A DNA stretch of 64,000 nucleotides, from positions 2,852,001-2,916,000 of the forward strand of contig JBLDXI010000054.1 in the NCBI GenBank assembly GCA_047495785.1, in the 5' to 3' direction. This DNA is from Lepidodermella squamata (Eukaryota > Animalia > Gastrotricha). The translations under genes were made by a program, and so were the position numbers. The notes below the pieces were generated by a model. It ran no database searches, was not told where the DNA came from, and saw nothing but the letters and a program-made list of their open reading frames with translations. Positions 5,015-57,784 of the stretch are shown here, one piece after another (the first letter of the stretch is position 1; the number at the start of each line of letters is the position of its first letter).

Positions 5015-5086
5015 GGTCCCATGGTGTAGCGGTTAGCACTCAGGACTCTGAATCCTGCGACTCGAGTTCAAATCTCGATGGGACCT
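5015..5086 (+). tRNA. trnQ-CTG: tRNA-Gln(CUG), copy 1
   Basis: 72-nt cloverleaf GGTCCCA...TGGGACCT, anticodon arm CAGGA-CTCTGAA-TCCTG, T-loop TTCAAAT, followed by an oligo-T Pol III terminator. Confidence 0.97.
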
Positions 5087-5133
5087 TAATTTTTTTTTCG
5101 GCCTCCTTTTTCGACATTTTTTTTTACTTCGCC

Positions 5134-5184
5134 GCATATACAAATAATTACACTTGATGTCTTGCCCTTTATCATAGATCGGCT
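5134..5184 (+). promoter_or_regulatory. Putative bipartite snRNA promoter (PSE-like) upstream of U4
   Basis: CATATACAAA at about -75 to -66 and AGA[AT]CGG[CT]T at about -34 to -26 are kept in all five otherwise divergent tRNA-U4 spacers. The proximal element also precedes the truncated U4 at 11211. Confidence 0.55.
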
Positions 5185-5209
5185 TCAGCTCATATTTTCG
5201 TTGATCTTT

Positions 5210-5347
5210 AGCTTTGCGCAGTGGCAGTTCCGTACTCAGTGAGGTGCAAACCGAGAGGCGGAAATTGCTAATTGAAAACTACCCCAATTACCCGCTCTGA
5301 GGACCTACGGGTCCGCTGTAGCACTTTCTGGAGCCCCACAAGGGGCT
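5210..5347 (+). ncRNA. RNU4: U4 spliceosomal snRNA, copy 1
   Basis: Starts AGCTTTGCGCAGTGGCAG (U4/U6 stem II); k-turn stem-loop CTC-AGT-GA-GGT-GCAA-ACC-GA-GAG; TTGCTAATTGAAAAC (stem I); Sm-site region ACTTTCTGG; 3' hairpin AGCCCC-ACAA-GGGGCT. Confidence 0.95.
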
Positions 5348-5604
5348 TTTGAACATCAAAAACAAAAATCAAGTCTGGCTTTAATTCAAATTTTGCCACA
5401 AGTTTAACGAAGCGTTAAGTCAGCCGTATATCTTATTTTTTTCTAAAAATCTCCTGTACCAAAAATAATTGAATTAATCAATAACTTGATATCAGCCCCT
5501 GAAACTAAATTTTCCGCTTCGTTTAATAATTATTTTGGCTCTGATAATAATGTCTGTCTCCAGGTTCAACCATTTATTTCCCGGTGACTAGCATTTTGGG
5601 AAAA

Positions 5605-8237
5605 ATGAGCTCAAATAAACTTTTTAGAGATTTGTCCCTCACGTTAGCGTTAATTGCGGTTTTGGTCTCCTGTAAAGTTCGGTCGCATAAAACCGATGAA
5701 ACTTTCTACGACGAACCGAATGGAGCTAATGAAAGTGAGTTGTACATCAACAGCGAACAAGTGGAGGATTACGACCCGAAACCATCGACACCGGCTCCAA
5801 CTGTCAAGCCCGTGCTGGCCAATCTGATGAAGCGGGGACACAACGTCGTGAATCTCCTGTTAAAGAAAATTTTCTGGAATTATAACAAGGAAAGCATCCC
5901 TAGCAGGTGAAATCGCTGCTATTAATTAAAAAACAATTACAATTTCTTTTTGAATTTTCAGTCCCGTTGAGGTCCACATGGATGTATTGCTGCTCAAGGT
6001 CAAATACACTGTGGAAAAGGAGGGAATTTTCGAATGCGTTATCGCATTGATGATGGTAAAATAGCCCGATTCTATCTCCATCATAAAATTTCTATTTCAA
6101 ACAGGAATGGAGCGATCTTCGGATGTCTTGGTACGAAATATTTCAACTGTGCTTTTAAATGACTAAAATATGGCTAATCAGGGATCCTAAGGAGTACGGC
6201 AATGTTTCTGTTTTAGCTTTTGATTCCGATCGGGTTTGGCTCCCGGATATAGCGGTATTTCTTAATTTTAAAAGTTTGATACAAATAATTATTGTTATTT
6301 TTATTGAAGATGACCAACTCAGGTGACAAGGCTCGCTTATACTTTATTTCAAAGTATCATCGCCAATTTTGTTACAGCCGATCACATCTATTCGATTTCG
6401 AGAGATTCGCGGTTCATAGTGCGCGTAACCAATAATGGAGTATTCAAGTTCGTCCCTACAGGTCAAATATTTCAAAAAAATTCACGAATTTTAACTAATA
6501 TTTTTTTATCAACCAAAGGAACTGCTCGAACTTGGTGCGGTAAGGAACTTTCGTTTTTTGAGTCATTTTTTGAACGTTGGTCTTTTAGATCTGAAATTGT
6601 TGACTTTTCCCTTCGATTATCAAGAGGTGAGTTTATTCTTACTTTACCCTGCAGCGAATTTGATGACTTTTTTGTAGTGCTCGTTGGAGTTTGAAAGGTA
6701 ACTGGATGTTACTAAGATTGATCTCAGTTCAATAGCTGATTTCCGCTGGTCTCTCGACATGACAGCCCTGACATTTGATAACAAAAGCAATTTGCTAGTC
6801 GACGATTCTTTCGCGTCTAATCAGTTTTTCCTGTGCGAAAAGAATGTTTCGGTAAGTTTCATCGATTGTATAAATTTCGACTTGAGACTAATTTTGAACA
6901 ATTTCCCAGCGATATTACCATACTTACGAATTTACTGGAGAGACATTTTCGAGGCTGAGATTTGACTTCAAAGTTTGTTTCATTTATATAAGAGACCACC
7001 TTAATTGGGAAATGATTCAAACAGGTTCGCCGGAAGAGCACTTTTTACATTATCAACTTGATTTTTCCAGTAAGGTGGATTTTTTATTTTCAATATTTTA
7101 TTGATTTTTTGCTTTTTTAGTGTGCCACCCTATCTGCCATTCAATTGCTTGTTTTCTTGATCTCGAGTACCGATACTACAGCCGATAGGATAGGTTTCGG
7201 AACTACCAACCTGCTTACTCTAGTCGTGTTCCAGGTTAGGATAATTCCTCAGAATTTTCTTTCTAATTTCCTTTCCTTTTCAAGACCATTGTGACAGAGG
7301 AAATGCCGAGAACTTCGAACGCAGTTACAACGCTGTCCAAGTACATAATCGCCCTGATAGTCATAGCAGCCATCGGAATTTTCGAATCAGTCATCGTCGA
7401 ACGCATGTACTGCGAAACATCGCAATACCCACCTCCGAAATTCATCCTAACCATACTGAAGCACGTACCAATTCTGGGCTACGGGAAGCATCACATGACG
7501 CTGAAGAAGATGCACAAGCATAAGGTAAACAAATGAAGTGAATCCGATACTTATAGAGAGTAATCTTACTTTCTTCATTTCAGAAGCATCTTAAGAAATC
7601 TACTGCAAAACTTATGAAGAAGGCGATAACGTTCGACAGTGGGTTGTGTGAAAACAGTCCATCTAAAGGGAGTATGGAGAAGGAACGGAATGGTCTGAGT
7701 AATCACCCAGTTGGTATCAATGAACTAGAGTGCGACATCAACTCCATGAGCCAAAGAAGGAATTCCTATCATTACGCAGTTACGACTGGACTAGATCCTT
7801 GTTCCCAACAAACTATCCCGATTATTCAATCCCAAAATGGAGTTTCTGTAAGTTTGGCTAATAATTCTGACACTGGTACGGTCATCAAACACGGAGAACT
7901 GACAATCCACCTAAATTTCATCATCTCAAAATCTGCGGAGACCATCGGCGCAAGAAACGAGGAGGGTGATTCTGGGCCGAAAAGCATGAGTAGAGCTTCT
8001 GCATACGAAGACTGTGACGATACTGAATTCCTGAGAATCTGCCGTCACAACGCCCGTCTCTGGACGAGCTTCGCGTTGAAAATCGATTTTCTCACCTTCG
8101 TCGGATGTCTGACGGCGGCTATTATGGCCCCGCTTATGGCTTTCTTCCCGCTATTGGACTTCCAGGAAGGCTGCTACGACGAGGCTGGAAAACTTGCGGG
8201 ATTCGCAAACGAAACCCGACACGTTGATTCAGGATGA
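5605..8237 (+). CDS. Cys-loop ligand-gated ion channel subunit (nAChR/5-HT3-like, no vicinal loop-C cysteines)
   Basis: Signal peptide; WLPDI; spliced Cys-loop C-DLKLLTFPFDYQE-C; RRKSTFYIINLIFP before M1; M2 ADRIGFGTTNLLTLVVFQ; MPRTS; long M3-M4 loop; IDFLTF M4. Many short exons. Confidence 0.9.
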
Positions 8238-8377
8238 CATTTTATTTTTTTCTTGCATAACAAATTAACGATTTGCATGTGTTAGTTTCAAGCGTAAAGA
8301 GTTTTGTAGAACGTGATTAGCATCATCCTATAGAAATGTGAATAAATTATCATCGAATCATCTCTAACATCTAAAGC

Positions 8378-9296
8378 TTACTTTGCCAAACAGGAGCTAC
8401 CAGAAGCTCGCACTGCCTCCAGGAAGCCCAGCCAGTTTTGAGGCGTTTTCATGAGTTCTTCTCTTAGAGCGGCCATTCTGTCTTCTGAAGTCTGTTTAAA
8501 GGGATCTTATATTATCAACAATCTATTCCTCAAGGTCGGTTCCAAACCTTTCTATCGAAAATCTTAGCAATCTCTTCACTAGAGAACACGCTTTGATCTG
8601 TCAACTTTCCTCTCAGCGGACCATTGCGAGACAAAATCTCTAACAGCAAAGTGTCAGCATCGTCTAAAGCAGCGTTCAAAGCAGTTGAGAAGTGCTCCTT
8701 TCTGTCACCAGCCAAAATTCGATCAATTTCAGTTTTTTGACACGCTTGATACCACTTGATGTAGGGAGAATCTTCCATCATAGCGGCCTGGAAGTAGGCT
8801 AACCTTTCACCCAGATGCATGCAATGGAAAATTGCCAACAATGAGCTGTAAACTGCAAGTTTAACTTCTGATTCATCGTCGCCTTTTGACCGGCGTCGAC
8901 AAGTGCTTAGAATAGCTTCTTCAATCATTTTGCCCAAACTCTCCAAACCGCCACACCGAGCAGCTCTAGCCAGACCGACAAGCATAACATCATCCATGTT
9001 TCGAATGAACTCGCAAAGGACAGACTGGGCATTCTGACAGCCGTAGGTTTCGAAAATCAGTTCGATACTCTCAACATGGAAAGAATTATCATCGAGATGC
9101 GAGAGGGCCTTGACGAGTTGTATAGGATTGTACACGGCCTCGTCAAATTTGGCCAGAACACCACTTTGAAAGCAACCGTGCATTGTTTTGTTAAAACCAA
9201 GAATTTTCGTCAGAAACAAGTTTTTATTCTAAACAGCAACCCGAGTTTGATAAGAACTCTCTTATCTCTTGCGCTGCGTCTTGCACGTGCGATGTA
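8378..9296 (-). CDS. Hypothetical helical protein with possible C-terminal CARD/death-fold domain (5' end unresolved)
   Basis: 229-aa ORF bounded by GT-AG introns. Splicing out 8492-8547 adds a 38-codon last exon giving LTDQSVFSSEEIAKIFDRKTSEDRMAALREELMKTPQNWLGFLEAVRASG. Confidence 0.55.
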
Positions 9297-9562
9297 CTGG
9301 AAAGATTAGCGGTTGAAAAATCACGGCGTTCACAAAATTGTAAAAATTCAGACCGTGAAAGGTCGACTTAATGTTTGGTTGATGTGATACGTTTAAGCGG
9401 GAATGTTTATCTAGTACAGCCTCATCATTGAAGTTTGCCTCTCATCGTACCAACTGCAAATATTTACCTGCCTAAGCCAGTTGAGACCAAAATTTTGGCT
9501 AGTATTTTTTTGTGCTGGTAATACCTATTATTATGATGAGATTTTGTTAATCTTTCGCAACG

Positions 9563-10468
9563 ATGTTGGCAGTTTTTCTGCTTGTGATTAGCGTTCAGCT
9601 TACTGTAGGGCAAGAGTGCAGCGCGAAATCGGTACTGGACTTGACCAAAAATAAGTATCCGCCCGGGACAACACTTTCCGTTTCCTGCCCTTCATCTTCA
9701 ACCCCGGCGGTTACTGTGTCCACGTGCAATGCAAACGGAAGGTGGTCACCATCAAGACCATTTAGAGCTTGCAAAGGTATCTAGTATTCCCTAAATATTA
9801 TGATCACATTGATTTTTTTCAGTTTTTGAACCGGCAATAAACCGCAAGCCTACGAGGAATAACTATGATTACGATGTAGACTACGACCGCTGGGCAAGAC
9901 CGCCTGCTTCTCTACCTTACTCTTCCCAACCACTCTCGTGCAGCTGGCCTACTATAGCTCCTTCCTACGCCAGAGGCGTGAAAATCTCAATTGACTGCCC
10001 TTTCGGCTACATCGCCGGGAACAACACTGTCAACAAAACAACAACATTATCCTCTACAACTTGCACTAGTTACGGAAATTGGACAATCGAATTGGCTAAG
10101 TGCACAAGTCGGTCATGCCTAAATATATATCACTTAAACATTCAGTCCTTTTCATATTCCATACAGGCTATCGAAATCAGCCCTGTGTAATGCCCGAGAC
10201 TCCTAAGAATGGCTTGGTTTATTCGCATTCTCCGACCCTGGGAGGCAGTCCGAAAGGCGTCATTCAGTTCAGCAAGGGAAGCTTCATTAGGTAAGGAAGC
10301 GATAAATCGATCCCTCCTCCTTGCATTATTTTACGGAATTTGCTTCCCAGATACGAATGCATCGATGGGTATTTTCTGTATGGACCGAGGAGAATTAATT
10401 GCTTGGCTGACGGGGAATGGTCAACTGACCCTCCGCGCTGCGAACGCCATACGAGATCGGGGAAATAG
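9563..10468 (+). CDS. Small secreted Sushi/CCP-domain protein (three CCP modules)
   Basis: Signal peptide MLAVFLLVISVQLTVG; TCNANGRWSPSRPFRAC, TCTSYGNWTIELAKC and YECIDGYFLYGPRRINCLADGEWSTDPPRC; four exons. Confidence 0.85.
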
Positions 10469-10564
10469 ATCTTAACAAAGAAAATCATAGAGGATAAACT
10501 CAACGATTAAAAATAGCAATAAACGGCAAATACAGGAATTGCAACTTTGTTTTAGGTATTCACA

Positions 10565-10702
10565 AGCCCCTTGTGGGGCTCCAGAAAGTGCTACAGCGGA
10601 CCCGTGGGTCCTCAGAGCGGGTAATTGGGGTAGTTTTCAATTAGCAATTTCCGCCTCTCGGTTTGCACCTCACTGAGTACGGAACTGCCACTGCGCAAAG
10701 CT
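10565..10702 (-). ncRNA. RNU4: U4 snRNA, copy 2
   Basis: Reverse complement of copy 1 apart from one T/C in the GGACC[T/C]ACGGGTCC hairpin. Confidence 0.95.
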
Positions 10703-10822
10703 AAAGATTATCTAACATCGAAGCAGGAGCCGTTCTATGACGAAGGGCAAGACATTAAGTGAAATAATTTGTATATGCTGTGAAAGTAAAGAAATGTCTA
10801 AGAGGAGGCCGAAAAAAAGTGA

Positions 10823-10894
10823 AGGTCCCATCGAGATTTGAACTCGAGTCGCAGGATTCAGAGTCCTGAGTGCTAACCGCTACACCATGGGACC
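10823..10894 (-). tRNA. trnQ-CTG: tRNA-Gln(CUG), copy 2
   Basis: Identical 72-nt sequence on the minus strand, followed by a T-run. Confidence 0.97.
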
Positions 10895-11008
10895 GCTTGA
10901 AAAACTTGGTTGCATATACAGTTTTGATATCTCTATAACGCAATTCGTGGAATAATGTCTCGCTCATCAGTTTATTCCCGTCAGATCAAATTGTGACTAG
11001 CATTATTC

Positions 11009-11187
11009 TTATGTGAACAAGATCAGTGGAGTTATTGCTATAAGAGCTTTGTGCCGATTTCTTATCGAATTGTGGAACGCTGGATGTTCAACATCCTTAG
11101 GAATATTGGGGAATTTTAAACGAGCAGGTGAACATCTTGGGGAACGAACCTCTCCTGGAAGTATTTCGCTGATCCGTTTCTCGTTCA
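11009..11187 (-). pseudogene. 3' fragment of a glycosyltransferase gene (copy of the end of 18336-19334)
   Basis: Reverse complement closely matches about 19156-19334, including the intron and the DVEHPAFHNSIRNRHK exon. Similarity continues through the 3' flank to the tRNA. Confidence 0.85.
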
Positions 11188-11211
11188 CTGCGCCTGCCTC
11201 TGCGGAAAGCT
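11188..11211 (-). pseudogene. Truncated, degenerate U4 5' fragment
   Basis: AGCTTTCCGCAGAGGCAG (2 mismatches to the U4 5' end), preceded by AGAACGGCTCCAGCTTCGATATTAG, which matches the proximal upstream sequence of intact U4 copies. Confidence 0.7.
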
Positions 11212-11257
11212 AAGGGTCTACTAATATCGAAGCTGGAGCCGTTCTTTAACGCCTCTA

Positions 11258-11740
11258 AGAGTGAAATTCACTTTGACACGTGCAGCTCTCGTGGAAGCCC
11301 CACATGGACCGCACCCTGAGCCGCACCCTGAGCCGCACCAAAATCTCTCTTGGTACCATCGTTTGGCGCCCTGGGCTCACTTTCTGCTGGCGTCATGCCA
11401 GATACCTCGCTCACATCCGCTCGATGGCGACTTTCGGCTGCGCTGTACAATTTTCGTCCGCTATTAAGCAAAAAGCAACACCTGCGCCGCCTCGTCGTCC
11501 TCAAAAACAATTTCCTGCGTGCTATGCTTAAAGTTCGCCTCGCTGACCGCGTTCGCATCACCGAACTCGAGCGGCGATGTCGCCTGCCCGGCCTTTCCGA
11601 GTTTTTCTCCCTGGTTCTAAGCCGCACGCCTGCCGCCATGTCCTATCTCTCCGATTTCTGTTTCTGTTTACTCTCTGTCTTCACCGCTGTTCTAGCACTT
11701 GCGTTCCCCTTCTCATTCACCTACACCCGATAAAACGTTT
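11258..11740 (+). mobile_element. 5'-truncated non-LTR retrotransposon (LINE) ORF2 3' remnant
   Basis: Frameshifted reading LSWKPHMDRT...YLAHIRSMATFGCAV / LRRLVVLKNNFLRAMLKVRLADRVRITELERRCRLP matches the post-RT region pattern of LINE ORF2. Confidence 0.65.
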
Positions 11741-11963
11741 AGCTGGTAAAAATTCCATCCTTTTGCCTCCCCACCAGCGTCGAACTGTGTCAGACAATCG
11801 CGCGTGCTCGCGTTGTGCCGGCGCCTTCTTGTTTTTTGTCTGCTTTTGAATTTATTTAATTTGTATGTCAAATGAGGACAGCAAAAAAAGATTTTCGTTA
11901 CGCTCAACGAAAATCTGCAATTCTCTAGTTTGCTCAAATGATGAGCGCAGAGAAATTTTCCCT

Positions 11964-12979
11964 TCAACTGAATAAGATTAAGGGCGAGACCATAATTCGC
12001 GCCTTATTGCGCTTTTTGATCGAATAATGGAAGGAAGGATGCTCGACGTCCTGAAAGAAAGCAATCAAATCTTCACTTGTATTTTTATATAAAATTTTAG
12101 CCTCACCTCCCGCATTTCGAAGTCACTGAGCTTCTTTTCAGGCAGATACGCATTATAGTATCCGCCAAAGGTTACATTCATCTTGTAGATCGCAAATCCA
12201 TTGAAAGCTGAATCGACTTCGAAAAACCCACTTGGGCCAATTGAATTCAATGTACCATTAATGTTTCCCATGAATACAGAGTTCATGGGATCGCCATTGC
12301 CCCAATCATTGCTATTCCAGCCGTTGTAACGCAGTGCCCATAAGTCGTAGTAGTACGGCCTGTTGAAACTCACCACGTCCCATTTATCAGAATTTTTCAT
12401 GACAAAATCTAATTTTGTTAGATTGGCACGACTGTGTGCCGTAGTGTCATCCATGTCGATGGTTGCCATGTAATCGAAATCAGCGAAATGGCGATGGACG
12501 AATTGGAGCAATGTATTGCGCCCGATTGCTATGCGCCAACACCGGACCGGAAAGCACTCATGAAGATGGTCGACAATGATCAAGCTAAAACGAGGGGACA
12601 ACCTCTTCTTATGAAGCTTTAACTTGGCGAGAGTGCCATCCTCTGAATCGCTCACGAAAATAACGAAATGACAGTCCGCGAAAGCGCTGCATACTCTTTC
12701 CATTTGCACTATTGTCCTGTCGACATATTTTACAATATTTTTCGCCATGCCGGTAATAACAAGGCGGGGCGAGTTATTCTTCCGGTGACGCATTTCAGAT
12801 AAACCTGATTTGCCTGTTTCCGCCAATAATTCAAGCGAAGCCTGCTCAACCGCCGGCTGCGTTTTGTAGTGACACTGTAACCACGAGAAACAGCGAGTGG
12901 TAGCATTCAATATGTATTTTGATCCCGCTATAAGGAGGAACAATTTAACGATATAAACGAGAAGCGAATTTGAGCGCAT
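11964..12979 (-). CDS. GT-A fold glycosyltransferase with N-terminal membrane anchor (GT-1)
   Basis: ITGMAKN, SDSEDGT, RIAIGRN, DxD motif IDMDD, YYDLWALR, VDSAFNGFAIYK; intron 12051-12106, then DVEHPSFH...LILFS*. Confidence 0.85.
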
Positions 12980-13240
12980 GACGTTTTTGTATTTGGTTCA
13001 TAGGTATTCAGTTTGGTCATAACAGTGTTTCAGGGAGGCTTGGTTAAAATGAAATAAACACTTTGATATTCAGATACTAACCGTTATAAGGTGCAGCACG
13101 ATTGCGATGCGATTGTATTTAGTAGCTAACGACATTCTTAACATCTCGCGCAGCGAAGAGAAATGCTTATTTTCAGACGTTGCGAAATTGTTAGCAACAT
13201 GCTATTCCAATGGATTGTCGCAGATTATTTGTTATTCAAA

Positions 13241-13378
13241 AGCCCCTTGTGGGGCTCCAGAAAGTGCTACAGCGGACCCGTGGGTCCTCAGAGCGGGTAA
13301 TTGGGGTAGTTTTCAATTAGCAATTTCCGCCTCTCGGTTTGCACCTCACTGAGTACGGAACTGCCACTGCGCAAAGCT
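13241..13378 (-). ncRNA. RNU4: U4 snRNA, copy 3
   Basis: Same sequence as copy 2. Confidence 0.95.
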
Positions 13379-13497
13379 AAAGATCAACTAATATTTATGC
13401 TGAAGCCGTTCTATTCTGAAGGGCAAGACACCAAGTGAAATAATTTGTATATGCGGCGAAGTAACAAAAAATGTCTAAAAAGAGGCTGAAAAAATTA

Positions 13498-13569
13498 AGG
13501 TCCCATCGAGATTTGAACTCGAGTCGCAGGATTCAGAGTCCTGAGTGCTAACCGCTACACCATGGGACC
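13498..13569 (-). tRNA. trnQ-CTG: tRNA-Gln(CUG), copy 3
   Basis: Identical 72-nt sequence followed by a T-run. Confidence 0.97.
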
Positions 13570-14154
13570 AGATATGGATTGCAATTCGTTGGGCTTATCT
13601 GTATTGAATCTGATTATCAACCGACAAAACGTTCACGATCGGCTATTAATACGTAATATTAAATGCCCTTTAGTTATCGGAATATTTTACACCTCATATT
13701 TGATGTGGTTGAATTTGAGACGTTAGCTGATTGCTTTCCGATTAGACTTAATGGATATACTAGGGGTATTATTTTACAGAACAGATTGCGACATTTTGAT
13801 ATTAAATAAGTGTTACCTTTCCTAGCATGAGTAAAATTTCCAGCAAAGGAACGTCCATAAATTTAGTTCAACATTGTGTTCAAGGTAAAAAGCGCAAAAC
13901 GGATGTTTTTAGCGCATATACCCCTAGGCCAAATATATGTTAGGGCTATATGTAATTATATGTTTACATAATTTTACATAATGGACAGTTGATTTTCACA
14001 TATTGGACAGTTGATTTTTTAAGGAGGAGCACATATTGGACAGTTGTCTATTGTTCAGACCCATGAAACTCAAGAAACCCAAGAAACCCGTGGAAACCAA
14101 AATAGCTTTATTATTCAAAGTCAATTGAGCCCTTCACAAAGTTGTCGCAGCCCG

Positions 14155-14420
14155 AAAACCGAGCAGCATTCAGTCCAAATTTTGACAAATCGAGCAGCAA
14201 TCGGCCCCAATGTCGTGAATATCAAACAGCATTCAGCCCCAATTTCAACAAAATCGAGCAGCATTCCGTCCAATTTTCGACAAAATCGAGCAGCATTCCG
14301 TCCAATTTTCGACAAAATCGAGCAGCATTCCGTCCAATTTTCGACAAAATCGAGCAGCATTCCGTCCAATTTTCGACAAAATCGAGCAGCAATCGCCAAC
14401 ATTTCGTGAGATTGAGCAGC
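14155..14420. repeat. 32-bp minisatellite, about 8 units
   Basis: Unit AAAATCGAGCAGCATTCCGTCCAATTTTCGAC; CGAGCA recurs at 14255, 14287, 14319, 14351, 14383; outer units degenerate. Confidence 0.92.
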
Positions 14421-15093
14421 ACTCAGCGGCAATCTTCCAGCACCCAGAACTCCACCGGGACAATCGAGGCATCCAAGCAGCAGTCGTCATCAATGTTGAG
14501 AAAATCGCGCAGCATTCCCCCTCGAAATTGCCAAAACAGCGCCGTATTCGTCTTGTTTTCCGTGCCATTCCATCAGCCTTTGTTCCTGGCTCCAACTGGT
14601 TCAACGGCACTCTTCCTCGAACGGGATCGATACCATGATTGAGCTTGAGATCGACAATGACCAGATCGGCGACTAGTTGCCATGAGTCGAATTCACTCGC
14701 CAGGTTGATTTGATGAGCCGACAGTTCAAATAGCTCGAGCCATTGTGCGATTCTTCATCGTAGCAGCGTGCCAGTTTGACGCGAAGATCCGGCGGCAAAA
14801 AAGCGAGTGAAAATCAAAACGAAAATCGACCGAATGAGCGTTTGATTTAAAAATGGCGAAAAGCTCAGTTTTTGATGAAAAATTAAGTTGGATGTTTTAT
14901 TTTCCCATTTTCCATGATAACCTCACAAATAATGTCCTCGCCTGCGGCTCGGCCATTATATGTTCGGTTTTTCAACATATTTCCTCCTCTATGTCCAATA
15001 TATACACATAAATACCACTGATAAGATCAGCCTGCTATCATTTCAAGATTTAAGGGGCTTCGTCGCTAAAAAATTATTTTGAAGTACAATTCC

Positions 15094-18077
15094 ATGTTAT
15101 TCAATTGTCTTCACTTGCTAATCTTAAAGTATGCGTAATATTTTTTTTGCATCGCCTTTTTTCAATAACTTTTCAACCATGAGGAATGTTTTAAAGTGGT
15201 TTTCACCAGTCGATAGATCTAGTCTGCGGTAAACTTTCCTCAAATTTTCATTTGAATTGGGTGCGAGAGAAAAAATTGGTGACGAAAATTCTGTCCGCGA
15301 TTTTTATTGAAAATTCTCATTTTTGAAAAATGGCATTTCACAGGATTTGAGGTTGGAAGACATCCTCCTGTTGAAAGGCTTTATCGGAATTTTTTTTAGC
15401 AGGAAATTAGGTCAATAACGCACCGTCAACAAGGAAATTCGACTTAGCGACCACAAAGAAGGTCTTATCCACCAAACGCGATCCGAAATGAATTTTCGGA
15501 ATTTTTTGAGTGATTTGTGTCAATTTTATGAAGCCTTCAGTTTTGGATAGTTGTACAATGTTCTTTCAGGAATCAGTGACGTAGATCCATTACGGACCAT
15601 CCTCTCAAAAAAACTCGAAGCCTCTGGCAAGAGAGACAATCAATTCAGACCAAATAAGATGCAAAAATAGCATTTTTCAAAAATGAGAATTTTCAATAAA
15701 AATCGCGGACAGAATTTTCGTCACCAATTTTTTCTCTCGCACCCAATTCAAATGAAAATTTGAGGAAAGTTTACCGCAGACTAGATCTATCGACTGGTGA
15801 AAACCACTTTAAAACATTCCTCATGGTTGAAAAGTTATTGAAAAAAGGCGATGCAAAAAAAATATTACGCATACTTTACTTCTTCGCGTTTGTATTGCAA
15901 CAAGCGTGAAAGAGAAAGTTTTACAAATGATTGCACTGGTACCAATGACTGGCTACCAGCCGCGTGATGGAAAAATGTGTATGACGGCGATGCAGGTGGC
16001 TGTCAACGAGGCAAACGCAAAATCCGATTTTCTGCCCGAATACCGCGTAGAAATTGCATTCAGAGATGAAGGCCCTGGAGGAGCCTTTAGCCCACGGCAT
16101 CTTATCAACTTCCTTAATACTCCTAGAAACATAACTACTGCTATGTCTCCTATAATTTTGGGCAGTTTCTTTCAGTGCCAAACTGCACACGATATTGCTC
16201 GTGAAAACTACATGGCCATGATAAGTCCCGGCTGTTCAGGCTATCTTCTACTCGATCGCAGCAGGTATCAGAACCTTTACCGAACAATGGTCCCTAGCGA
16301 CTTAACCAACGAAGTCCTGATTCAAATAATTAAAAAAGTTGGGAAGTGGCGTCAAATCGGCCTCGTTCTTAATGCTGTGAACCTCAACATTTTCGCCCTT
16401 GGCAAATCTTTTTATGACAGAGCTGTTAGCAAGGGTATCGAAATTGTCCAATTTACAATTGTAACCGATATAACAGATGAGACTATCGATTCGATTATTC
16501 AAAGCAAAGCTCGAATTATCAAACTGCTGATTGTTGAAATTCCTCTGGTCGTCAAATTTATCTGCCTAGCCTATGCGAGAGGACTTCGAGCACCAAAGTA
16601 TGTCATCATGACCCCGTATACAAACTACGTTGATCCGCTAGCTGCTAGCCTGCAACTTCCTGCTGGATGCAATCGGAGAATGATTGCAGACCAAATCAGG
16701 ATCACGCTGTATCATGGCGCTGCTACAATGCCTATTCGTAATTTTGGTCAAACAGATCTGGGCTACGACCTCAGCGGCTATACGACACGTTTTGATTCGC
16801 TGACGAGCGGATCTCGCCTCCCCGACTATGAGATCAGTCCTTACTGCCACGACTCAGCGGTACAAGCTCTTGTAGCCCTTCACAACGCTGAAATGAGACT
16901 CAGTGCGAGAAATTTGACGCTAATGCATTTTCGCGATAACCCGGCAGAAGTCTTTCGGGTAGTCAACCAAACAATAGCCGAGTCGGATTTCATTGGCATC
17001 CGGGCAGGTCGTCTGAAGTACTCGTCTCGCCTCGAGTTCGAATACGAAGAAATGTATTTAATACAACGCACGGCAGGTGACAACCCAAGAATAGTTGGGA
17101 CAATCGTTAAGAATGAATCGTCCACCGATTTTTCATTCGTCAAAAATTCAAAAGCTGTTTGGGTAACTGCAACTGGTAAATCGCCAAAAGATCTCTCGCA
17201 GGTGCTTCAAATAGAAGTCCGTATAAATCCAAGTATACCTCCTGCAATCCTAAGCTCAAGTTTGCTGGTAATAATCACTCAGTTATTCATAACCGTGTGG
17301 AAAATCCGTGAAAGGCCGACTGTGGTAAAATATTTGGATGTAAGCTTTTCTTGTGGCTGTTCCATGCTGAACGTTGCTGCTGTACTTCAGACATTAGAGT
17401 TGACCTCCAATGTGATTTGCGTAGCTCGGGAATCTCTCCTGCTGTTGGGGTTATCATTACTCGTATCAGTAATGCTAGTTCAAGTTTTGCAGCTGAAGAT
17501 TGCACAGCGTGAACGGTCGGCTTCAAGCACACTAAGCCGCTACAATTCGATTGGTCGGAAAGCAAAAAATCGCTGCTACATTGAGGTTAGGCCACAAACA
17601 GTACCTAAAGGAGTCGTCACTTCTTCCGTTTGCTTTATCTTTTTCAACATTGCAATGTATGCAGTTCGGTCCTTTTCGGATCCAATCGCAGTTATGATGG
17701 ACCAAAGTGCAATCGAGTTTAACCAGGAAGTGGATAACTACATCCAGCTTAACGTCAAAACATGTTCTTCTGAGCATCTTAGCCTTTGGTTGGCCACATT
17801 TGCCTGTCTACATGTTTTGTTGCTAATTACAATAAGCTCGCTTCATTTTCAGATGTCTCAGCTGAAATTTATCACAGAAAATGGAGCGATATACAGTGAA
17901 GCTAGATGCCATCGCTTAGCCTCTTGGAATTTGACTATTCTTCTTACCTTCGGTGCGTTTCTAGCGGTAGTCGTGCCTAGTGACGCGTCATTTCAAGCCG
18001 CGCTATTTAGCTCTGTGCTACTGGTTGTATCTGCATCTTCGAGTTCCATATATTTTAGTTGGAAATTGACGAGCTAA
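15094..18077 (+). CDS. Class C GPCR, GABA-B-receptor-like (Venus flytrap domain + 7TM), signal peptide interrupted by a MITE
   Basis: 723-aa ORF with AVNEAN..DFLPEY, LLDRSRYQNLYRTMVP, SPKD before TM1, no Cys-rich domain and seven hydrophobic segments. ATG 15094 joins in frame once the element at 15127-15876 and one TA are removed. Confidence 0.85.
15125..15878. mobile_element. MITE / non-autonomous DNA transposon with long perfect terminal inverted repeats and TA target duplication
   Basis: 15125-15332 is the reverse complement of 15671-15878 (208 bp including the flanking TA); 338-bp non-coding core. Confidence 0.93.
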
Positions 18078-18335
18078 AACCATTTTTAGGTGGAATGAAG
18101 ACAAATATCGGAAATTGCCCGAATAATCTAGTGAAGTAAACTTGAGATTTAATATGGGAATATGTGAAAGATAAGCACCTTTCTCGCGGATTAGGTAACG
18201 CAGGTAAAGCCACGTGACAATAAAGGCTCACTTTTCAGTTGCGCAACATGCTTAACAACCAAGCCTTGGTGTAACAGCGCGTGAGAGCGCCATCTATGGA
18301 ACATTGAACTGTTACAGTTAAAAGAGACTGAGCAG

Positions 18336-19334
18336 ATGTACATTATCGGCTGTTTTGCATTTTTCAAATTTCTGCCCTTCATCGCAGCCTCTGTGCCCCT
18401 TTTTAATTTGATACGCTGGGTATTACTTCTGAAATGCCACTATGAATCGCAGGTGGCCTTGGAGATGGCATCGTTTGAACTTCTTTCTAATCGTAATGAT
18501 TATAAAGAGGCTAAAGCCGTCGAGAACGCACCTCGTATAGTAATTACTGGCATGGCCAGAAACATTGCTAAGCACGTGGACGGCACATTCGCTCAAATCG
18601 AAAAAATATGCAGCGTATTCCGAGATTGTCACATCGTCATTTTCGAGAGCGACTCAAAAGATGGCACCCTCGAAAAATTGAGACAGCAACAGGCGAAGTT
18701 TGCTAATCGGGTGAATGTAATCTCAGTCAGTGGACTCGACTATTGCCTATGGGCCCGAACGTTTCGTTTAGCTAAAGGTCGAAATACGCTTCTTCAATTT
18801 GTGCATCGCCATTTCACAGATTTTGATTACATGGCTATGATCGACATGGATGAAACGACAGCGGCTAGAGATGTGAATATTACTGTTTTAAATTTCACCC
18901 TCAACAATTCTGATCGGTGGGACGTTATAACCTTTAACAGAGCTTCTTACTACGACATCTGGGCGTTGCGTTATCGCGGTTGGGATAGCAACGATTGGGG
19001 CAACAGCGATCCTCGAAATTCTGAACTTCAGGCCAATATATCCCATACGTTGGAATCGATAGGACCGCATGAATTTCTATACGTCGATTCGGCATTTAAT
19101 GGGTTTGCGATCTACAAGATGAATTTCACATTTGGAGGGCATTATGCTGGCTATTTGAACGAGAAACAGATTAGTGAAATACTTCCAGGAGAGGTTCGTT
19201 TCCCAAAATGTTCACCTGCTCGTTTAAAATTTTCCAATATTTCGAAGGATGTCGAACATCCAGCGTTCCACAATTCGATAAGAAATCGGCACAAAGCTCG
19301 AATAGCAATAACTCCACTGATCCTGTTCACATAA
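18336..19334 (+). CDS. GT-A fold glycosyltransferase (GT-2)
   Basis: Same motifs as GT-1 (FESDSKDGT, RLAKGRN, IDMDE, YYDIWALR, VDSAFNG, DVEH). A 54-nt in-frame GT-AG intron at 19194-19247 sits at the paralogous position. Confidence 0.85.
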   Translation: MYIIGCFAFFKFLPFIAASVPLFNLIRWVLLLKCHYESQVALEMASFELLSNRNDYKEAKAVENAPRIVITGMARNIAKHVDGTFAQIEKICSVFRDCHIVIFESDSKDGTLEKLRQQQAKFANRVNVISVSGLDYCLWARTFRLAKGRNTLLQFVHRHFTDFDYMAMIDMDETTAARDVNITVLNFTLNNSDRWDVITFNRASYYDIWALRYRGWDSNDWGNSDPRNSELQANISHTLESIGPHEFLYVDSAFNGFAIYKMNFTFGGHYAGYLNEKQISEILPGEVRFPKCSPARLKFSNISKDVEHPAFHNSIRNRHKARIAITPLILFT

Positions 19335-19439
19335 GAATAATGCTAGTCACAATTTGATCTGACGGGAATAAACTGACATTATTCCACGAATCGCGTTATA
19401 GAGATATCAAAACTGTATATGCAACCATGTTTTTCAAGC

Positions 19440-19511
19440 GGTCCCATGGTGTAGCGGTTAGCACTCAGGACTCTGAATCCTGCGACTCGAGTTCAAATCT
19501 CGATGGGACCT
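19440..19511 (+). tRNA. trnQ-CTG: tRNA-Gln(CUG), copy 4
   Basis: Identical 72-nt sequence followed by a T-run. Confidence 0.97.
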
Positions 19512-19627
19512 TCATTTTTTCGGCCTCATTTTAGAGATTTTTTACCTCGCCGCATATACAAATGATTTCATTGGCGGTGGGTCCCATCATTACAGAACGG
19601 CTCCTGCTTCGACTTTTGTTGATCTTT

Positions 19628-19765
19628 AGCTTTGCGCAGTGGCAGTTCCGTACTCAGTGAGGTGCAAACCGAGAGGCGGAAATTGCTAATTGAAAACTAC
19701 CCCAATTACCCGCTCTGAGGACCTACGGGTCCGCTGTAGCACTTTCTGGAGCCCCACAAGGGGCT
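19628..19765 (+). ncRNA. RNU4: U4 snRNA, copy 4
   Basis: Same sequence as copy 1. Confidence 0.95.
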
Positions 19766-20512
19766 TGTGAATCCGATACAAATTTTCAAGACATTGGGAA
19801 TCTTCAAATTCATTTGCGGTCATTTGCTGTGATAAGACAACGCGGCTCTAAAACTCCAAATGATTTTTATTTTCAATTTGTACTTAAATTTGTTGGAACA
19901 GAATTAAAAGAAAAGATTTAGTCTTAATATCGGGGAAGTGAGGCGCTTACTTAGTTTGGCATTAGGAACCAGACTGCTAAGGCAAAATAACAAAACAAAT
20001 CATCCTATATAAAAATCACTGTGAGAGCGCCCTGCTCTATTTTGCAGGAAAATTCCCACAAAAAAATTATCAATAAAAACAATGAACTTTCGCTATCACG
20101 CGTTTCTTTCGCCATAACGCTGTGCAACCAGCTACATATTCCATTATCCGTCATAAGATTGCAAGAAAAATCAAAATCTTGCTAATCACGTGATTGCACA
20201 GGAAACAAGATTTTCCCCCAAAAATCATCCAAGCCACAGCAGACGACAATCAGTCAATAATGAGGCATATACCCCATAACGCTATTGGCCTTCAAGGTGC
20301 CCTTGCCATTGCAAAATAAGATAGCAAACCGTTGGAATAATATTTGGCAAATTCGACTTACTAAGCGGCATTAATAGAGGTTTCAGCTTCCAAATAATCT
20401 GTCTGTGTCGCAGACAACTGCACCCTAACGATTGTCTGACGATCGTCTCATTTTAACCAAGCCTTCCCACAGCACGTTTACTAGTCCTTTGACCAAACAT
20501 TGCAAAAACATA

Positions 20513-21537
20513 ATGCGCTTGACTTGGCGTCTAATTAAATTTTTTAAATTGTTTCTTGTCATAGTGGGATCTAAGTACGTCTTAAGTGCCAGCTTTCGCT
20601 GCTTTTTATGGATACATTGCCACTACAATACGCAGATGGCAATTGAGAATGCATCGCATGAATTATTGGACCATCGCAATGCAATTAAAACAATCATAGA
20701 TGATACATCTAACGTGGACAACCAGAGGAAATACTTGCCCAGTCTTGTTATTACCGGCATGGCAAAAAATATTGTAACGGAAGTAGACAGGACAATAGCG
20801 CAAATGGAGAGAATATGCAGCTTATTCCATGATTGCCACATCGTAATTTTCGTGAGCGATTCAGCTGATGGCACGATCGCCAAGTTGCAGTATCATAAAA
20901 AGAGATTGTCCCCTCGTTTTAGTTTGATAATGGTTGACCAACTTCGTTACTGCTTACCGATTCGATGTTGGCGCATAGCAAAAGGGCGCAACACCCTGCT
21001 CCAATTCGTCCATCGCCACTTCGCTGATTACGATTACATGGCAACCATCGACATGGATGACACTACGGCACACAGTCGTGCCAATCTAACAAAACTAGAT
21101 TTTGTCATGAAAAATTCTGACAAATGGGACGTTGTGAGTTTCAACAGGCCGTACTACTACGACTTATGGGCACTGCGTTACAACGGCTGGAATAGCAATG
21201 ATTGGGGCAATGGCGATCCCATGAACTCTGAATTCATGGGAAACATTTCTGGTACATTGCATTCATTGGGCCCGAGTGGGTTTCTGGAAGTCGATTCAGC
21301 TTTTAATGGATTTGCGATCTACAAGATGAATTTCACATTTGGCGGGTATTATAATGCGTTTCTGAGTGAAAAGCGACTAAGTGACTTGGAAATGCGGGAG
21401 GTAAGTTGATATTATATAGAAATGCTGAGATGATCATTTTGTTTTAGGACGTCGAACATCCTTCCTTCCATTATTCTATTACAAAGCGCAATAAGGCGCG
21501 AATTATGGTCTCACCCTTAATCCTATTCGACAGCTAA
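20513..21537 (+). CDS. GT-A fold glycosyltransferase (GT-3)
   Basis: ATG 20513 (MRLTWRLIKFFKLFLVIVG); same motifs; intron 21401-21447; last exon DVEHPSFHYSITKRNKARIMVSPLILFDS*. Confidence 0.85.
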
Positions 21538-22152
21538 TGGTATCGGGAGTTGATGATTTTTTACTCCGGACAGCAATCATATCCGGATCTCGATTGATCG
21601 TCCTTCAGCTCGCATATAGCTAGCCTTCAGGCCGAAATCCACCGTTGTGATATCCTCCAATGATACACATATTGCATAATATAATTATTTCAAGCCTTCA
21701 ACTCTCTCATTTTGCCCTATGGGATCTATTAGCACTGCTCAAATACACTTCGAAAAATATGGCATCCACGTAAAAAGGAATGAGTGTCGATCGCTCTTGG
21801 TTGTTTTGTGAGAAAGATAGTCTCAGCCATGTCTCAACACTCCTTTAAAGCTCCAACAATTCAACATCAAACTCCAACATCAAAAAGGATCTAAGAAATA
21901 AATTGTTGGTTTATTGTTATACCTTTGCAGCGATGTGCTTTACGAATAGTTCCGTTATATGGCTAAGCAAGCAATTTCATGAATGCGAAAAAAAGAAATA
22001 TAATGCAAGTCATTTGTTGTTCAAGACGGAAGAATAAATTGAGGTAAAATGAGTTGGAGCTTTAAACCGCGCCGGTCCCATGATTTAGAAGATGGCCGAG
22101 GAATTATTACATCTGAAAGTTGTATTCTAACTCCAGGTCATGTTTTTCAAGC

Positions 22153-22224
22153 GGTCCCATGGTGTAGCGGTTAGCACTCAGGACTCTGAATCCTGCGACT
22201 CGAGTTCAAATCTCGATGGGACCT
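22153..22224 (+). tRNA. trnQ-CTG: tRNA-Gln(CUG), copy 5
   Basis: Identical 72-nt sequence followed by a T-run. Confidence 0.97.
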
Positions 22225-22346
22225 TCATTTTTTTTTCGGCCTCCTTTTTATACATTTTTTTTACTTCGCCACATATACAAATTATTTTACTTGATGCCTT
22301 GTCCTTCAGAATAGAACGGTTTCCGCTTCGATCTTAGATAATATTT

Positions 22347-22484
22347 AGCTTTGCGCAGTGGCAGTTCCGTACTCAGTGAGGTGCAAACCGAGAGGCGGAA
22401 ATTGCTAATTGAAAACTACCCCAATTACCCGCTCTGAGGACCCACGGGTCCGCTGTAGCACTTTCTGGAGCCCCACAAGGGGCT
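22347..22484 (+). ncRNA. RNU4: U4 snRNA, copy 5
   Basis: Same sequence as copies 2 and 3. Confidence 0.95.
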
Positions 22485-22958
22485 TATGAATATCAAAAAC
22501 AAGAACTTGTAGTCGAGTCCATTCGTTCGAAGTTTGAGCTTGATGTGCGGTGACCGGCAGCTGGTTTCATCAGTCCAACACACTCAGTCGCTACGGCACG
22601 CTTGAAGCCCCCATTCTTTCTGTTACACTGGTTTCTGTGAAATGTGTTTGATCCCAGTATAGCAGACCTTCATTGCCGAAGAATCTGCAATCTGCGCAAC
22701 TTCCCGGCAGCAAATCTTGAGTTTCCCGTTTTAGTCATATTTGAAGGATACAAATATCACTAAATTCTATAAAATGGTCCAAAGTTTTTCTCTAAATTTT
22801 TGCGATGGTGGCGGATGGCGATACCAATACAAACATGTCCATCATTAATAGGTAACTTTTCTAGTCCGAAAATGTCTGATAAAAGAATAATCGGTGATTT
22901 ATTCATTGGCCTGAAGAATGTTTTGTGAAAAGAAGTTATAAACAAGCATATCAACATA

Positions 22959-24930
22959 TCAGAAAGACAAGTTGTTCATCGCCGCAGCGCTCGGCAGTGC
23001 CTTCTGATTTGTGATTCTCGAATTTTTCAATAAAGTGCTCGACAACAATGGCCGCTCCGCAACACTAAGATCGCCCTTCCGCAAAGGTGTCGCACCAATG
23101 AACTGTGACGGAGCCTCGTAGAACAGCTCACGAGACAGCATAACCTGCTCCATGCCAAGATTCTTCGCTGTTTTCTCAGCCAGCTTATTGAAATCGACAA
23201 AATGAACAATGTCACGTTGAACCGCTCGGCCAGAACTGTCGATCAGGGGATGATCGTCGGCGTCCAGCTTAACCATCTCGTCGAACGGGCCACGACCGAC
23301 GCCGACGATAATGATCGAAATCGGCAGGGAACTTGCATGAACGATAGCTTCAATTGTGGACTTCATATCAGTGATGTATCCATCCGTGAAAATTAGCAAA
23401 ATGAAATAATGCTTGTCGTCATTGTGTTCATGAGCTAGACTGTAGAAAATGGCAAAATAGTTAACAAAAATCGGTATAAGCGCTAAATTACTTGGCCACT
23501 AGGTTTATCATTGGGGATAGTTCGGCAGGTTCTTGCGGTATAATTTTCTTTGTTGCAGCTCGGTACGTCGACAGAACCTCTTCGACCCCAAAACAAGCCG
23601 GATTTTCTTGGTCTCCTGACTGAAAAAACACAAGACTAAATTGCCCAGAATGAGACTTTTCGAGAATTATACCAAAGCGAAATCGTGACGAAGTTCCATA
23701 GAAGGCGGAGCTTGAGCACCGAATCCATAGACAGGTAGGACTAATTCCGTCGAATCGTCGAGGGATTGGGCCGACTCAAGAACTGTTTTTATGGCGTCGT
23801 AATAAGGACCCTTTGTGTTCCTTCCGCTCCCCTCGATCTTGTGCAACCACATAAGGGTATCCGAAGAGCCATTGGACGCCGAAAAATCAATAGCAACAAA
23901 GTAATGCAAAGACGTTCCCCTGAAACAACGAAAAGCACGATCATCAGAAGAGGTCCATAGACCCTCCCAGGAGGATCACAAAGGTCCCCTAAAAAAATTA
24001 CCGGAGAAGAACGAAGTCCAGGAAAAATTCGTGGATTTCTTTTGAGATGCCGACAAGTCGCATCGTCATGCCATTGATCGACATGGGATAGATGTTGTCG
24101 GCACTGTTATCCGAGGCCAGTCTTCGCAGGTTGGTTTCCCGGCTGCAAATCAGCTTATGACTACCATTCGATTTAGCCTTCCATAGCGATAAATGCAAAG
24201 TTTTATCCTCATCGTCGGAGCAAAGCGAGAATCTTGTAATGTTAAACGAGTTCCAAAGTTGGTTCAACGACGTTTTAGCGTCATTTTTCACCGATATCTG
24301 CTCGCTTCGATAGACAAGCTGCTGCCGCCCCTCCATAGATTTTCTCAATTCGAAAAAGTAAGAAGCTGGTTGGAGTAACTTTGGCGGTGGTAAATTGTCG
24401 ATTCCGAAGCGAATGATCAACGAATCCCTCCGATTTTCAAGAACTTCAGCTGCGATAACTAGCAAACCTCGCGGCTTCGAATTGCCCTTCACAAAAATCT
24501 TCTCTTCATGAATTAGGAAAGAATTGAATTCGACAAGAGCGCTGAGGGCTAGTTTCGCCTTCCCGACCAAATTCTCCTTTTTGAAAATCGCTTTCTTGAT
24601 TGGGATAGTTGGCTTCCAGTCATCAACGTCCCAGACACGGAATTTAATCCTTTGCCGCTCGCCTGGGATGTAGCACACGCAGACTTTGGTCGAAAACTCC
24701 GGGTTCAGGTTGTCCCAAATGACCTCGGTACGGCCGATTTCTTTCCAGCGATCGGTTTTACACGTAGCACCCATATTTTCGATGTAAGCAACAATGCAGG
24801 CGTCGGTTTTCGAGAAAGTGTCCATGTTTTTGAGCTCGCGACAACTCAGCGTCATTTCAATGATGCATTTGTCGAGGCAGCTTTTCGGCATGCCGAAAGA
24901 ACTTTTCGATGGCACTGATCGGGTTAACAT
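22959..24930 (-). CDS. CPNE: Copine (C2-C2-vWA), paralog 1, divergent
   Basis: DTFSKTD...GRTEVIWDNLNPEF (C2A); [31 protein letters not shown] (vWA); four exons. Confidence 0.92.

Positions 24931-41200: not shown

Positions 41201-43645
<2,445 letters not shown>

Positions 43646-46228: not shown

Positions 46229-48006
<1,778 letters not shown>

Positions 48007-53157: not shown

Positions 53158-54843
<1,686 letters not shown>

Positions 54844-55948: not shown

Positions 55949-57784
<1,836 letters not shown>

Follow-up and report, generated by a model that had tools for sequence, protein, structure and literature searches.

Each of the five intact U4 snRNA genes in the 64-kb window (the whole stretch of DNA that was analysed) lies 116-123 nt downstream of a co-oriented tRNA-Gln(CUG) gene, all five pairs being copies of a single unit. 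We favour, at about even confidence, the interpretation that this unit is a cassette of two separate transcription units which have been inherited together, multiplied by local duplication, and kept alike by selection and conversion.

Anatomy of the tRNA-Gln/U4 pairs

ARAGORN detected exactly five tRNA-Gln(CTG) genes in the window and Rfam exactly five full-length U4 genes. The two are paired in the same orientation in five of five cases, as the original prediction had stated, and no intact U4 in the window lacks an upstream tRNA-Gln (0/5). The pairs are referred to as modules M1 to M5 (Table 1). All tRNA copies have the cloverleaf, the CTG anticodon and the A and B boxes (65 bits against 29 in Rfam). 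The U4 copies match positions 1-138 of the RF00015 model at 106-107 bits, the gathering score being 46, and contain the 5' stem-loop, the U6-pairing regions, the central stem-loop, the Sm site and the 3' stem-loop. The Sm site, ACUUUCUGG, is unusual. The prediction of identical tRNAs and of U4 genes that are one base apart also held: tRNA identity is 100% in all five, and the U4 copies vary only at nt 97 (C or T), which is located in a loop.

A run of six to nine Ts begins 3 nt past the tRNA in all five cassettes, and additional T-runs follow downstream of it in four of them (M1, M3, M4 and M5). U4 itself contains no T-run and is not followed by a conserved one in the five copies; in M2, M4 and M5, the first 19 nt past U4 lack a T4 run. 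All five copies, as well as the corresponding locus of a related organism (organism B), carry the motif TGAAT..AAAAACAAA at about +5 to +21 after U4. With this 3'-box-like motif within about 20 nt, and no Pol III terminator after U4, the 3' end resembles that of Pol II-type animal snRNA genes.

The spacers between tRNA and U4 had been described as diverging while keeping their length and two motifs. Divergence (69-80% pairwise identity) and length were borne out, but 64 of 123 columns are invariant and the conservation thus exceeds two motifs. The longest run of invariant columns is 11 (P = 0.02). The last 78 nt before U4 are free of indels across the five copies and contain conserved blocks at -76 to -65, -63 to -39 and -36 to -24, with the start of ATATACAAAT at -74 and that of AGAxCGG at -34 in every copy. 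From the end of the tRNA to the promoter block the distance is 42-49 nt, i. e. it has a spread of 7 nt, whereas from the block to U4 +1 it is always 74 nt. Length variation is confined to the tRNA-proximal 38-45 nt, the T-rich part, which means that the fixed geometry is that of promoter to U4 and not that of tRNA to U4. The non-T blocks CGGCCTC and TTTTAGACA are also kept in the tRNA-proximal spacer and have no obvious role.

As a yardstick for a PSE-driven animal snRNA gene we took an upstream element that is conserved and lies in fixed register between about -45 and -75. The U4 upstream blocks, compared among the five U4 copies, are in invariant register and may represent such an element. 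A motif common to the U4 promoter blocks and 73 other U4 upstream regions, in register, was not found.

Table 1. Positions of the tRNA-Gln/U4 modules, the U4 relic and neighbouring features in the window
Feature	Position	Strand	Evidence or remark
M1 tRNA-Gln(CUG)	5015..5086	+	ARAGORN; Rfam tRNA 65 bits
M1 spacer, 123 nt	5087..5209	+	T-runs beside tRNA, then 78-nt indel-free U4 upstream region 5132-5209
M1 U4 snRNA	5210..5345	+	T at nt 97; Rfam RF00015 106.1 bits
M2 U4 snRNA	10567..10702	-	Rfam 107 bits
M2 spacer, 120 nt	10703..10822	-	U4 upstream region 10703-10780
M2 tRNA-Gln(CUG)	10823..10894	-	ARAGORN; Rfam
Recent duplication tract: glycosyltransferase 3' end, intergenic DNA and tRNA	10814..11187	-	94-98% identity to 19156-19520
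Truncated sixth module (relic): U4 nt 1-18 with promoter from about -70 to -1	11194..11281	-	+1 at 11211
Glycosyltransferase GT_b', between M3 and relic	12065..12979	-	Paralogue of 20432-21409, dS 0.41
M3 U4 snRNA	13243..13378	-	Rfam 107 bits
M3 spacer, 119 nt	13379..13497	-	U4 upstream region 13379-13456
M3 tRNA-Gln(CUG)	13498..13569	-	ARAGORN; Rfam
Glycosyltransferase ORF, co-oriented with M4	18336-19334	+	Stop codon 105 nt before M4 tRNA
M4 tRNA-Gln(CUG)	19440..19511	+	ARAGORN; Rfam
M4 spacer, 116 nt	19512..19627	+	Most divergent of the five, also in the block at -63..-39; U4 upstream region 19550-19627
M4 U4 snRNA	19628..19763	+	T at nt 97; Rfam 106.1 bits
Glycosyltransferase GT_b, between M4 and M5	20432..21409	+	
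M5 tRNA-Gln(CUG)	22153..22224	+	ARAGORN; Rfam
M5 spacer, 122 nt	22225..22346	+	U4 upstream region 22269-22346
M5 U4 snRNA	22347..22482	+	Complete set of U4 elements in Rfam alignment; Sm site ACUUUCUGG
M5 post-U4 conserved motif CTTnTGAAT..AAAAACAAA	22483..22507	+	Candidate 3' box

Copy history and occurrence in other organisms

The 15 informative sites fall into seven different groupings, and 64 of the 105 site pairs are incompatible with a single tree. This mosaic points to gene conversion between the copies. Beyond about -60 and +30 the similarity of the flanks drops to random level, with the exception of the upstream flank shared by M2 and M4. The modules show joint repeats, homology limited to the unit and a mosaic of variants, which together define a co-amplified linked small-RNA unit under concerted evolution. 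Being copies of a single unit, the five pairs represent one origin followed by long retention, and not five independent coincidences.

Glycosyltransferase paralogues adjoin the modules in two inverted arms. The nearest co-oriented gene upstream is 105 nt away from M4 and 744 nt away from M5. The duplication tract shared by M2 and M4 stops 9 nt past the tRNA, and the spacers of these two modules are just 73% identical. At unconstrained sites, the younger duplication (dS 0.41) would be expected to show roughly 69% identity, and the overall spacer identity is near this value; the spacers of M4 and M5 are 70% identical despite the saturation (dS at least 1.9) of the adjacent glycosyltransferase genes. 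The exact protein encoded by the neighbouring glycosyltransferase gene is not on record, its best homologues being metagenomic GT2 proteins with at most 36% identity.

The relic of a sixth module scores under any Rfam threshold and ends where a duplicated segment of the glycosyltransferase 3' end adjoins it. In a local alignment upstream of it, a tRNA remnant was no better supported than in random DNA (P = 0.47). According to the original prediction, the only U4 without a tRNA is dead. The relic does exist, but an argument for a need of the tRNA cannot be built on it: it is dead because a rearrangement truncated U4 at nt 18, and it therefore carries no information on the dependence of U4 on a tRNA.

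In organism B, tRNA-Gln and U4 are linked as well, about 122 nt apart. Among 71 other animal-type U4 genes there was none with a co-oriented tRNA within a few hundred bases upstream, and no match was obtained when metagenomes were scanned for a B box followed, after 118-148 nt, by a U4 5' end. The control set, obtained from a metagenome scan with the U4 5' end alone, comprised 76 loci, of which the closest was identical at 108 of 136 positions, i. e. no close relative was among them. Judged by the sequences compared, the linkage of tRNA-Gln and U4 is lineage-specific. An animal tRNA-U4 or tRNA-U1 cassette was not found in a literature search that covered few subscription journals, which does not prove that none has been described.

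Possible relations between the tRNA and U4

In the favoured interpretation, the unit of about 0.4 kb would consist of a functional tRNA-Gln(CUG) gene, transcribed by Pol III through its internal A and B boxes and terminated at the adjoining T-runs, and of a Pol II-type U4 gene, which would have its start at a constant distance from a 78-nt upstream region of its own and end at the 3'-box-like motif, where no T-run is present. We infer this assignment of polymerases, and likewise that U4 has no strict need for the tRNA. The cassette would have originated before this species split from a relative. Local duplication would then have multiplied it along with the neighbouring glycosyltransferase genes, and purifying selection on both genes, together with gene conversion anchored in the identical sequences, would have kept the copies alike. 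The gap between tRNA and U4 is so short that almost any duplication of U4 and its promoter includes the tRNA. Counted against separate units are the presence of a tRNA at all intact U4 genes in the window, the retention of non-T blocks in the spacer, and the 70% identity of the M4 and M5 spacers.

A functional coupling of the two genes is the alternative to be taken most seriously, although we regard it only as tentative. The tRNA, bound by TFIIIC and TFIIIB, could hold the region open and stop Pol II coming from an upstream co-oriented gene, thereby shielding the U4 promoter. In a compact, operon-rich genome the pair might then be retained by selection without any need for strict positioning. 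This would fit the tRNA at five of five intact U4 genes, its presence in organism B and absence from the 71 other genes, and the co-oriented genes upstream of M4 and M5; a barrier would also tolerate a distance variation of 7 nt. The enhancer or insulator role that the original prediction had offered for a TFIIIC-bound tRNA may hold on the strength of the linkage in the window and in organism B and of its absence from the 71 other genes. However, co-duplication of two genes 120 nt apart predicts the same pattern, tRNA genes of yeast are able to repress adjacent Pol II promoters as well, and a role that depends on position is at odds with a variable distance from tRNA to promoter block next to an invariant distance from block to U4 +1. 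The more specific proposition that Pol II snRNA genes of this animal lineage, here U4 with tRNA-Gln, rely on a co-oriented Pol III tRNA immediately upstream as a barrier or chromatin opener is less likely than not. If true, it would be an animal counterpart of the companion tRNAs of trypanosomatids, of separate origin and spanning two polymerases.

A closer parallel to trypanosomatids, in which U4 would be read by Pol III and would use the tRNA's A and B boxes as position-specific promoter elements, is very unlikely. The roughly steady distance of a tRNA upstream of every U4 does resemble the arrangement of companion tRNAs and small RNA genes in trypanosomatids (PMC2784804). Yet neither a divergent tRNA, nor strict spacing between tRNA and snRNA, nor a Pol III snRNA terminated by a T-run was found here: tRNA and U4 are co-oriented in all five modules, the 7-nt spread in the distance from tRNA to promoter block corresponds to about two thirds of a helical turn, three of the five U4 copies have no T4 run close to their 3' end, and T-runs intervene between the two genes.

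The T-runs bear equally on the idea, put forward in the original prediction, that read-through from the tRNA yields a tRNA-U4 precursor, which Pol III would transcribe and which would be cut into both RNAs. Co-orientation and the short gap are in line with this, and dicistronic genes of a tRNA and a small RNA are known elsewhere, with plant tRNA-snoRNA and Yarrowia tRNA-5S genes as a precedent (PMC2566860). But the junction is not free of terminators in any of the five cassettes, further T-runs follow in four of them, the spacer has promoter-like blocks in fixed register to U4 +1, and a Pol III terminator after U4 is absent. The T-runs, the rigid U4 upstream region and the 3' motif thus disfavour a common precursor, and we consider it highly improbable. 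The same low probability applies to a SINE-like spread, in which a rare read-through RNA of tRNA, spacer and U4 would have been reverse-transcribed and inserted together with the U4 promoter to give functional copies with sharp ends. Homology indeed runs from close to the 5' end of the tRNA as far as an A-rich stretch located about 20-30 nt past U4, and M3 is surrounded by an 8-nt direct repeat. Consistent target-site duplications were, however, not found in a retroposition test of the five modules, being absent at M1, M2, M4 and M5, and about 15% of random flank pairs have a chance match of an 8-mer or longer. In addition, the homology of M1, M2 and M4 extends upstream to about -45 and so beyond any Pol III start, the A-rich motif has a fixed place and is 3'-box-like, and strong terminators lie in the path of such a transcript.

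If the tRNA is required for U4 expression, the cassette would be the first case in animals in which a Pol II snRNA gene has a Pol III gene as a permanent component, and a natural system for studying how tRNAs shield or open adjacent promoters in compact, operon-rich genomes. If it is dispensable, the cassette would still be a clean example of two small-RNA genes in concerted evolution as a unit, and a useful marker for the annotation of snRNA genes in a poorly known lineage.

Comparison with known tRNA and small-RNA gene linkages

In trypanosomatids, companion tRNA genes are described for U3, U6, 7SL and U2 (Nakaar et al. 1994 cited in PMC2784804; PMC4950102); they are divergent and 93-105 bp away, with a critical spacing and with transcription of the small RNA by Pol III. 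Both systems have, throughout the family, a tRNA placed shortly upstream of the snRNA gene with little variation in distance. The cassette differs in the co-orientation of its tRNA, the T-runs between the two genes, the 7-nt variation in distance and the Pol II-type features of U4.

In yeast, tRNA genes act as roadblocks: at about half of them Pol II is blocked by TFIIIB (PMC5052057), and intergenic Pol II transcription is halted by tDNAs (PMC4228148). M4 and M5 are similar in that their tRNA has a Pol II gene on its upstream side and a promoter on its downstream side. The barrier role has been shown in yeast, however, and is not known as a constant component of snRNA genes.

The dicistrons of plants (tRNA-snoRNA) and Yarrowia (tRNA-5S) are not known to have a terminator between the two genes or a separate promoter for the downstream RNA. 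The cassette shares with dicistronic genes the co-oriented tRNA directly upstream of another small RNA gene, but has strong T-runs and a conserved promoter-like region between tRNA and U4.

Linked small-RNA families of animals generally form long tandem arrays with 5S rDNA as their basis. Among fish, molluscs and crustaceans, 5S rDNA is linked to U1, U2 or U5 snRNA genes or to tRNA genes (e. g. PMC3464664). Like these families, the cassette combines two small-RNA genes with their own promoters that are repeated as a unit and undergo concerted evolution. It differs from them in being a 0.4-kb pair of a specific tRNA and U4 with an almost constant gap, interspersed with protein-coding genes.

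Five copies of a tRNA-U4 cassette

All five tRNA genes found with ARAGORN in the 64-kb window are tRNA-Gln(CTG), and the five U4 genes scored 106-107 bits with Rfam models. Besides these U4 genes no Rfam family was above threshold in the window, and a permissive scan of its first 30 kb revealed no additional snRNA. As the original prediction had stated, U4 lies 116-123 nt downstream of a co-oriented tRNA-Gln(CUG) in each of the five modules (tRNA, spacer and U4; M1-M5). The tRNAs are indeed identical and the U4s differ at one base only, nt 97, a loop position of the central stem-loop. No structural element of U4 is missing, and the Sm site of all copies is ACUUUCUGG, compared with the usual AAUUUUUGG. 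Being copies of one unit, the five pairs represent a single origin followed by long retention.

The homology between the modules starts 20-45 nt 5' of the tRNA (in M3 at the tRNA itself) and stops about 20-30 nt past U4. The flanks outside align at random level (15-41%), except for the upstream flank of M2 and M4, which is common at 85-97%. The spacers are 69-80% identical between copies, with 64 of 123 columns invariant. Within the window, the conserved spacer blocks recur outside the modules only in a relic at 11211.

Three intronless GT2-type glycosyltransferase paralogues are under purifying selection (dN/dS 0.17-0.35); their closest database relatives are metagenome proteins of at most 36% identity, one of them labelled viral metagenome, which fits a possible non-animal origin. 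An inverted repeat just upstream of a long ORF looks like a young MITE-like insertion, and M3 is preceded, in minus-strand direction, by a tandem array. A long series of minus-strand C2-domain and copine-type ORFs suggests a tandemly expanded copine-like gene family.

Features of the window, with tRNA-U4 gap and base at U4 nt 97 for the modules
Feature	Position	Strand	Remarks
M1	5015-5345	+	gap 123 nt; T
M2	10567-10894	-	gap 120 nt; C
Relic, U4 +1	11211	-
Putative ORF	11268-11639	-	123 codons
GGTGCGGCTCAGG tandem copies	11282-11345	-	inside putative ORF
GT_b' (GT2-type)	12065-12979	-
M3	13243-13569	-	gap 119 nt; C
Tandem array	14155-14410		32-nt unit, at least 8 units
Inverted repeat	15125-15338 / 15665-15878		214-nt arms, 99% complementary, 326 nt apart
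Long ORF	15906-18077		receptor ligand-binding domain
GT_a (GT2-type)	18336-19334	+
M4	19440-19763	+	gap 116 nt; T
GT_b (GT2-type)	20432-21409	+
M5	22153-22482	+	gap 122 nt; C; Sm site 22447-22455, equivalent place in others
C2-domain/copine-type ORFs	23998-30930 and 42653-57784	-
Inverted arm (repeat map)		+	GT_a, M4, GT_b, M5
Inverted arm (repeat map)		-	M3, GT_b', relic, GT_a' fragment, M2

Putative transcription signals in and around the spacer

A run of T6-T9 begins 3 nt past the tRNA in all five modules, and M1, M3, M4 and M5 have two extra T-runs within the following 35 nt. The interior of U4 contains no T4 run in any copy. No conserved T-run is present 3' of U4, and M2, M4 and M5 are without any within 19 nt; the motif CTTnTGAAT..AAAAACAAA follows U4 in all copies. 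The 78 nt adjacent to U4 show no indels, and here ATATACAAAT and AGAxCGG start in every copy at -74 and -34, respectively, in fixed register to U4. Length variation is confined to the T-rich 38-45 nt adjoining the tRNA. An invariant run of 11 columns exceeds the expectation under random scatter of invariant columns (P = 0.02).

From the T-runs, the indel-free 78 nt and the 3' motif we infer two transcription units: probably a tRNA gene transcribed by Pol III, which carries its own terminators, and a U4 gene of Pol II type, equipped with a separate putative promoter in fixed register and with a 3'-box-like signal. What is rigid is the distance from promoter to start, not that from tRNA to start.

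In front of an unrelated environmental U4 gene, TATACAAATTATT followed by CGGCTCC occurs at about -38..-14. These words are also found in the U4 promoter of the window, at -72 and about -30, some 40 nt wider apart, which may be chance.

History of the copies and the relic

The dS between GT_b and GT_b' is 0.41, at which unconstrained sites should be about 69% identical; GT_a versus GT_b is saturated (dS at least 1.9). By this measure the spacer identity equals or modestly exceeds the neutral level for the younger duplication; if the modules were duplicated together with the genes, it exceeds that level by a good margin for the older one. The 15 informative module sites split the copies in seven different ways, with 64 of the 105 site pairs incompatible with one tree. 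Variants in common are clustered, e.g. M1/M5 at -107..-104 and M2/M5 at -9..-7. A recent M2/M4 tract of 94-98% identity terminates 9 nt beyond the tRNA, and the M2/M4 spacers are only 73% identical. The mosaic sites and the end of the tract are characteristic of gene conversion or recombination anchored in the identical genes.

In the relic the promoter is preserved from about -70 to -1, followed by the first 18 nt of U4, which abut a duplicated stretch from the 3' end of a glycosyltransferase. According to the order of the arms in the repeat map it stands where M5 stands in the other arm; it is a module that has decayed and been truncated. Upstream of it, the search for remains of a tRNA gave nothing better than chance (P = 0.47). 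This U4 had been noted as dead and without a tRNA; it died by truncation at U4 nt 18 and thus provides no evidence that U4 needs the tRNA. Tandem copies of GGTGCGGCTCAGG lie immediately upstream of the relic.

Linkage in other organisms and its possible causes

Metagenome contigs scanned for the whole tRNA-spacer-U4 arrangement gave no match. With the U4 5' end as sole query, 77 U4 starts were found on 76 of these contigs, and the 71 with at least 200 nt upstream served as the control set. Only three of the U4 contigs contain a tRNA, none of them near and co-oriented (closest 938 nt co-oriented, 507 and 387 nt divergent). Animal-type U4 genes are therefore not generally linked to a tRNA. On two environmental contigs, L014 (six tRNA genes) and L026 (three), U4 borders a cluster of tRNA genes, divergent and 390-510 nt off. 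Islands of small-RNA genes thus include U4 elsewhere as well, without tight co-oriented pairing.

No public sequencing run contained the entire stretch, nor is any recorded as RNA. Four of the runs (X1, X2, X6, X17) were compared with window positions 20400-23400. X1 covered all bins at about 95-99% identity, so it comes from the same species or one very closely related. Its contig depth summed over U4 was about 30x the single-copy level, a rough sign only of many copies. In X2 a glycosyltransferase piece is 91% identical to the window and the module flanks do not align. A 231-nt X2 contig matches U4 -20..+80 over 100 nt and the tRNA 3' end with its T-run over 38 nt, and the 93 unlike letters between the matched parts are exactly the number skipped. 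Provided that these 38 letters form the end of the contig, tRNA-Gln and U4 are linked in this organism as well, across a spacer of about 122 nt. The middle of this spacer is less than 80% like M5, and its U4 is followed by the same 3' motif as the window copies. tRNA-Gln genes without a following U4 are also present. X6 yielded one tRNA contig only and the small-RNA library X17 only tRNA fragments; both are uninformative on U4.

Given the gap of 120 nt, nearly any duplication that takes U4 with its promoter takes the tRNA too. We see an even chance that two autonomous genes are inherited as one cassette, whose copies would be kept alike by selection on both genes plus gene conversion. A read-through tRNA-U4 precursor, as originally proposed, is contradicted by the T-runs, and such a dicistron is extremely improbable. 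Equally improbable is SINE-like retroposition of the module, which lacks support: target-site duplications are not consistently present around the modules. A position-specific, Pol III-driven U4 as in trypanosomatids fails on orientation, spacing and terminators, and is only slightly less improbable.

A more serious competitor to autonomous genes in one cassette, though a tentative one, is that the tRNA gene would serve as barrier and chromatin opener, a role that requires no exact distance. In yeast, incoming Pol II is stopped by TFIIIB/TFIIIC (PMC5052057; PMC4228148), and by analogy the tRNA could shield U4 here; co-oriented genes precede M4 by 105 nt and M5 by 744 nt. That a Pol II snRNA gene genuinely depends on a Pol III gene here seems rather unlikely to us; if true, it would be much more interesting.

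The literature that was searched describes the companion tRNAs of trypanosomatids, the dicistrons of plants and Yarrowia, and 5S-linked snRNA arrays, but no cassette from an animal in which a tRNA is paired with a co-oriented snRNA gene of Pol II type. The tRNA-Gln/U4 cassette belongs among the linked small-RNA gene units.
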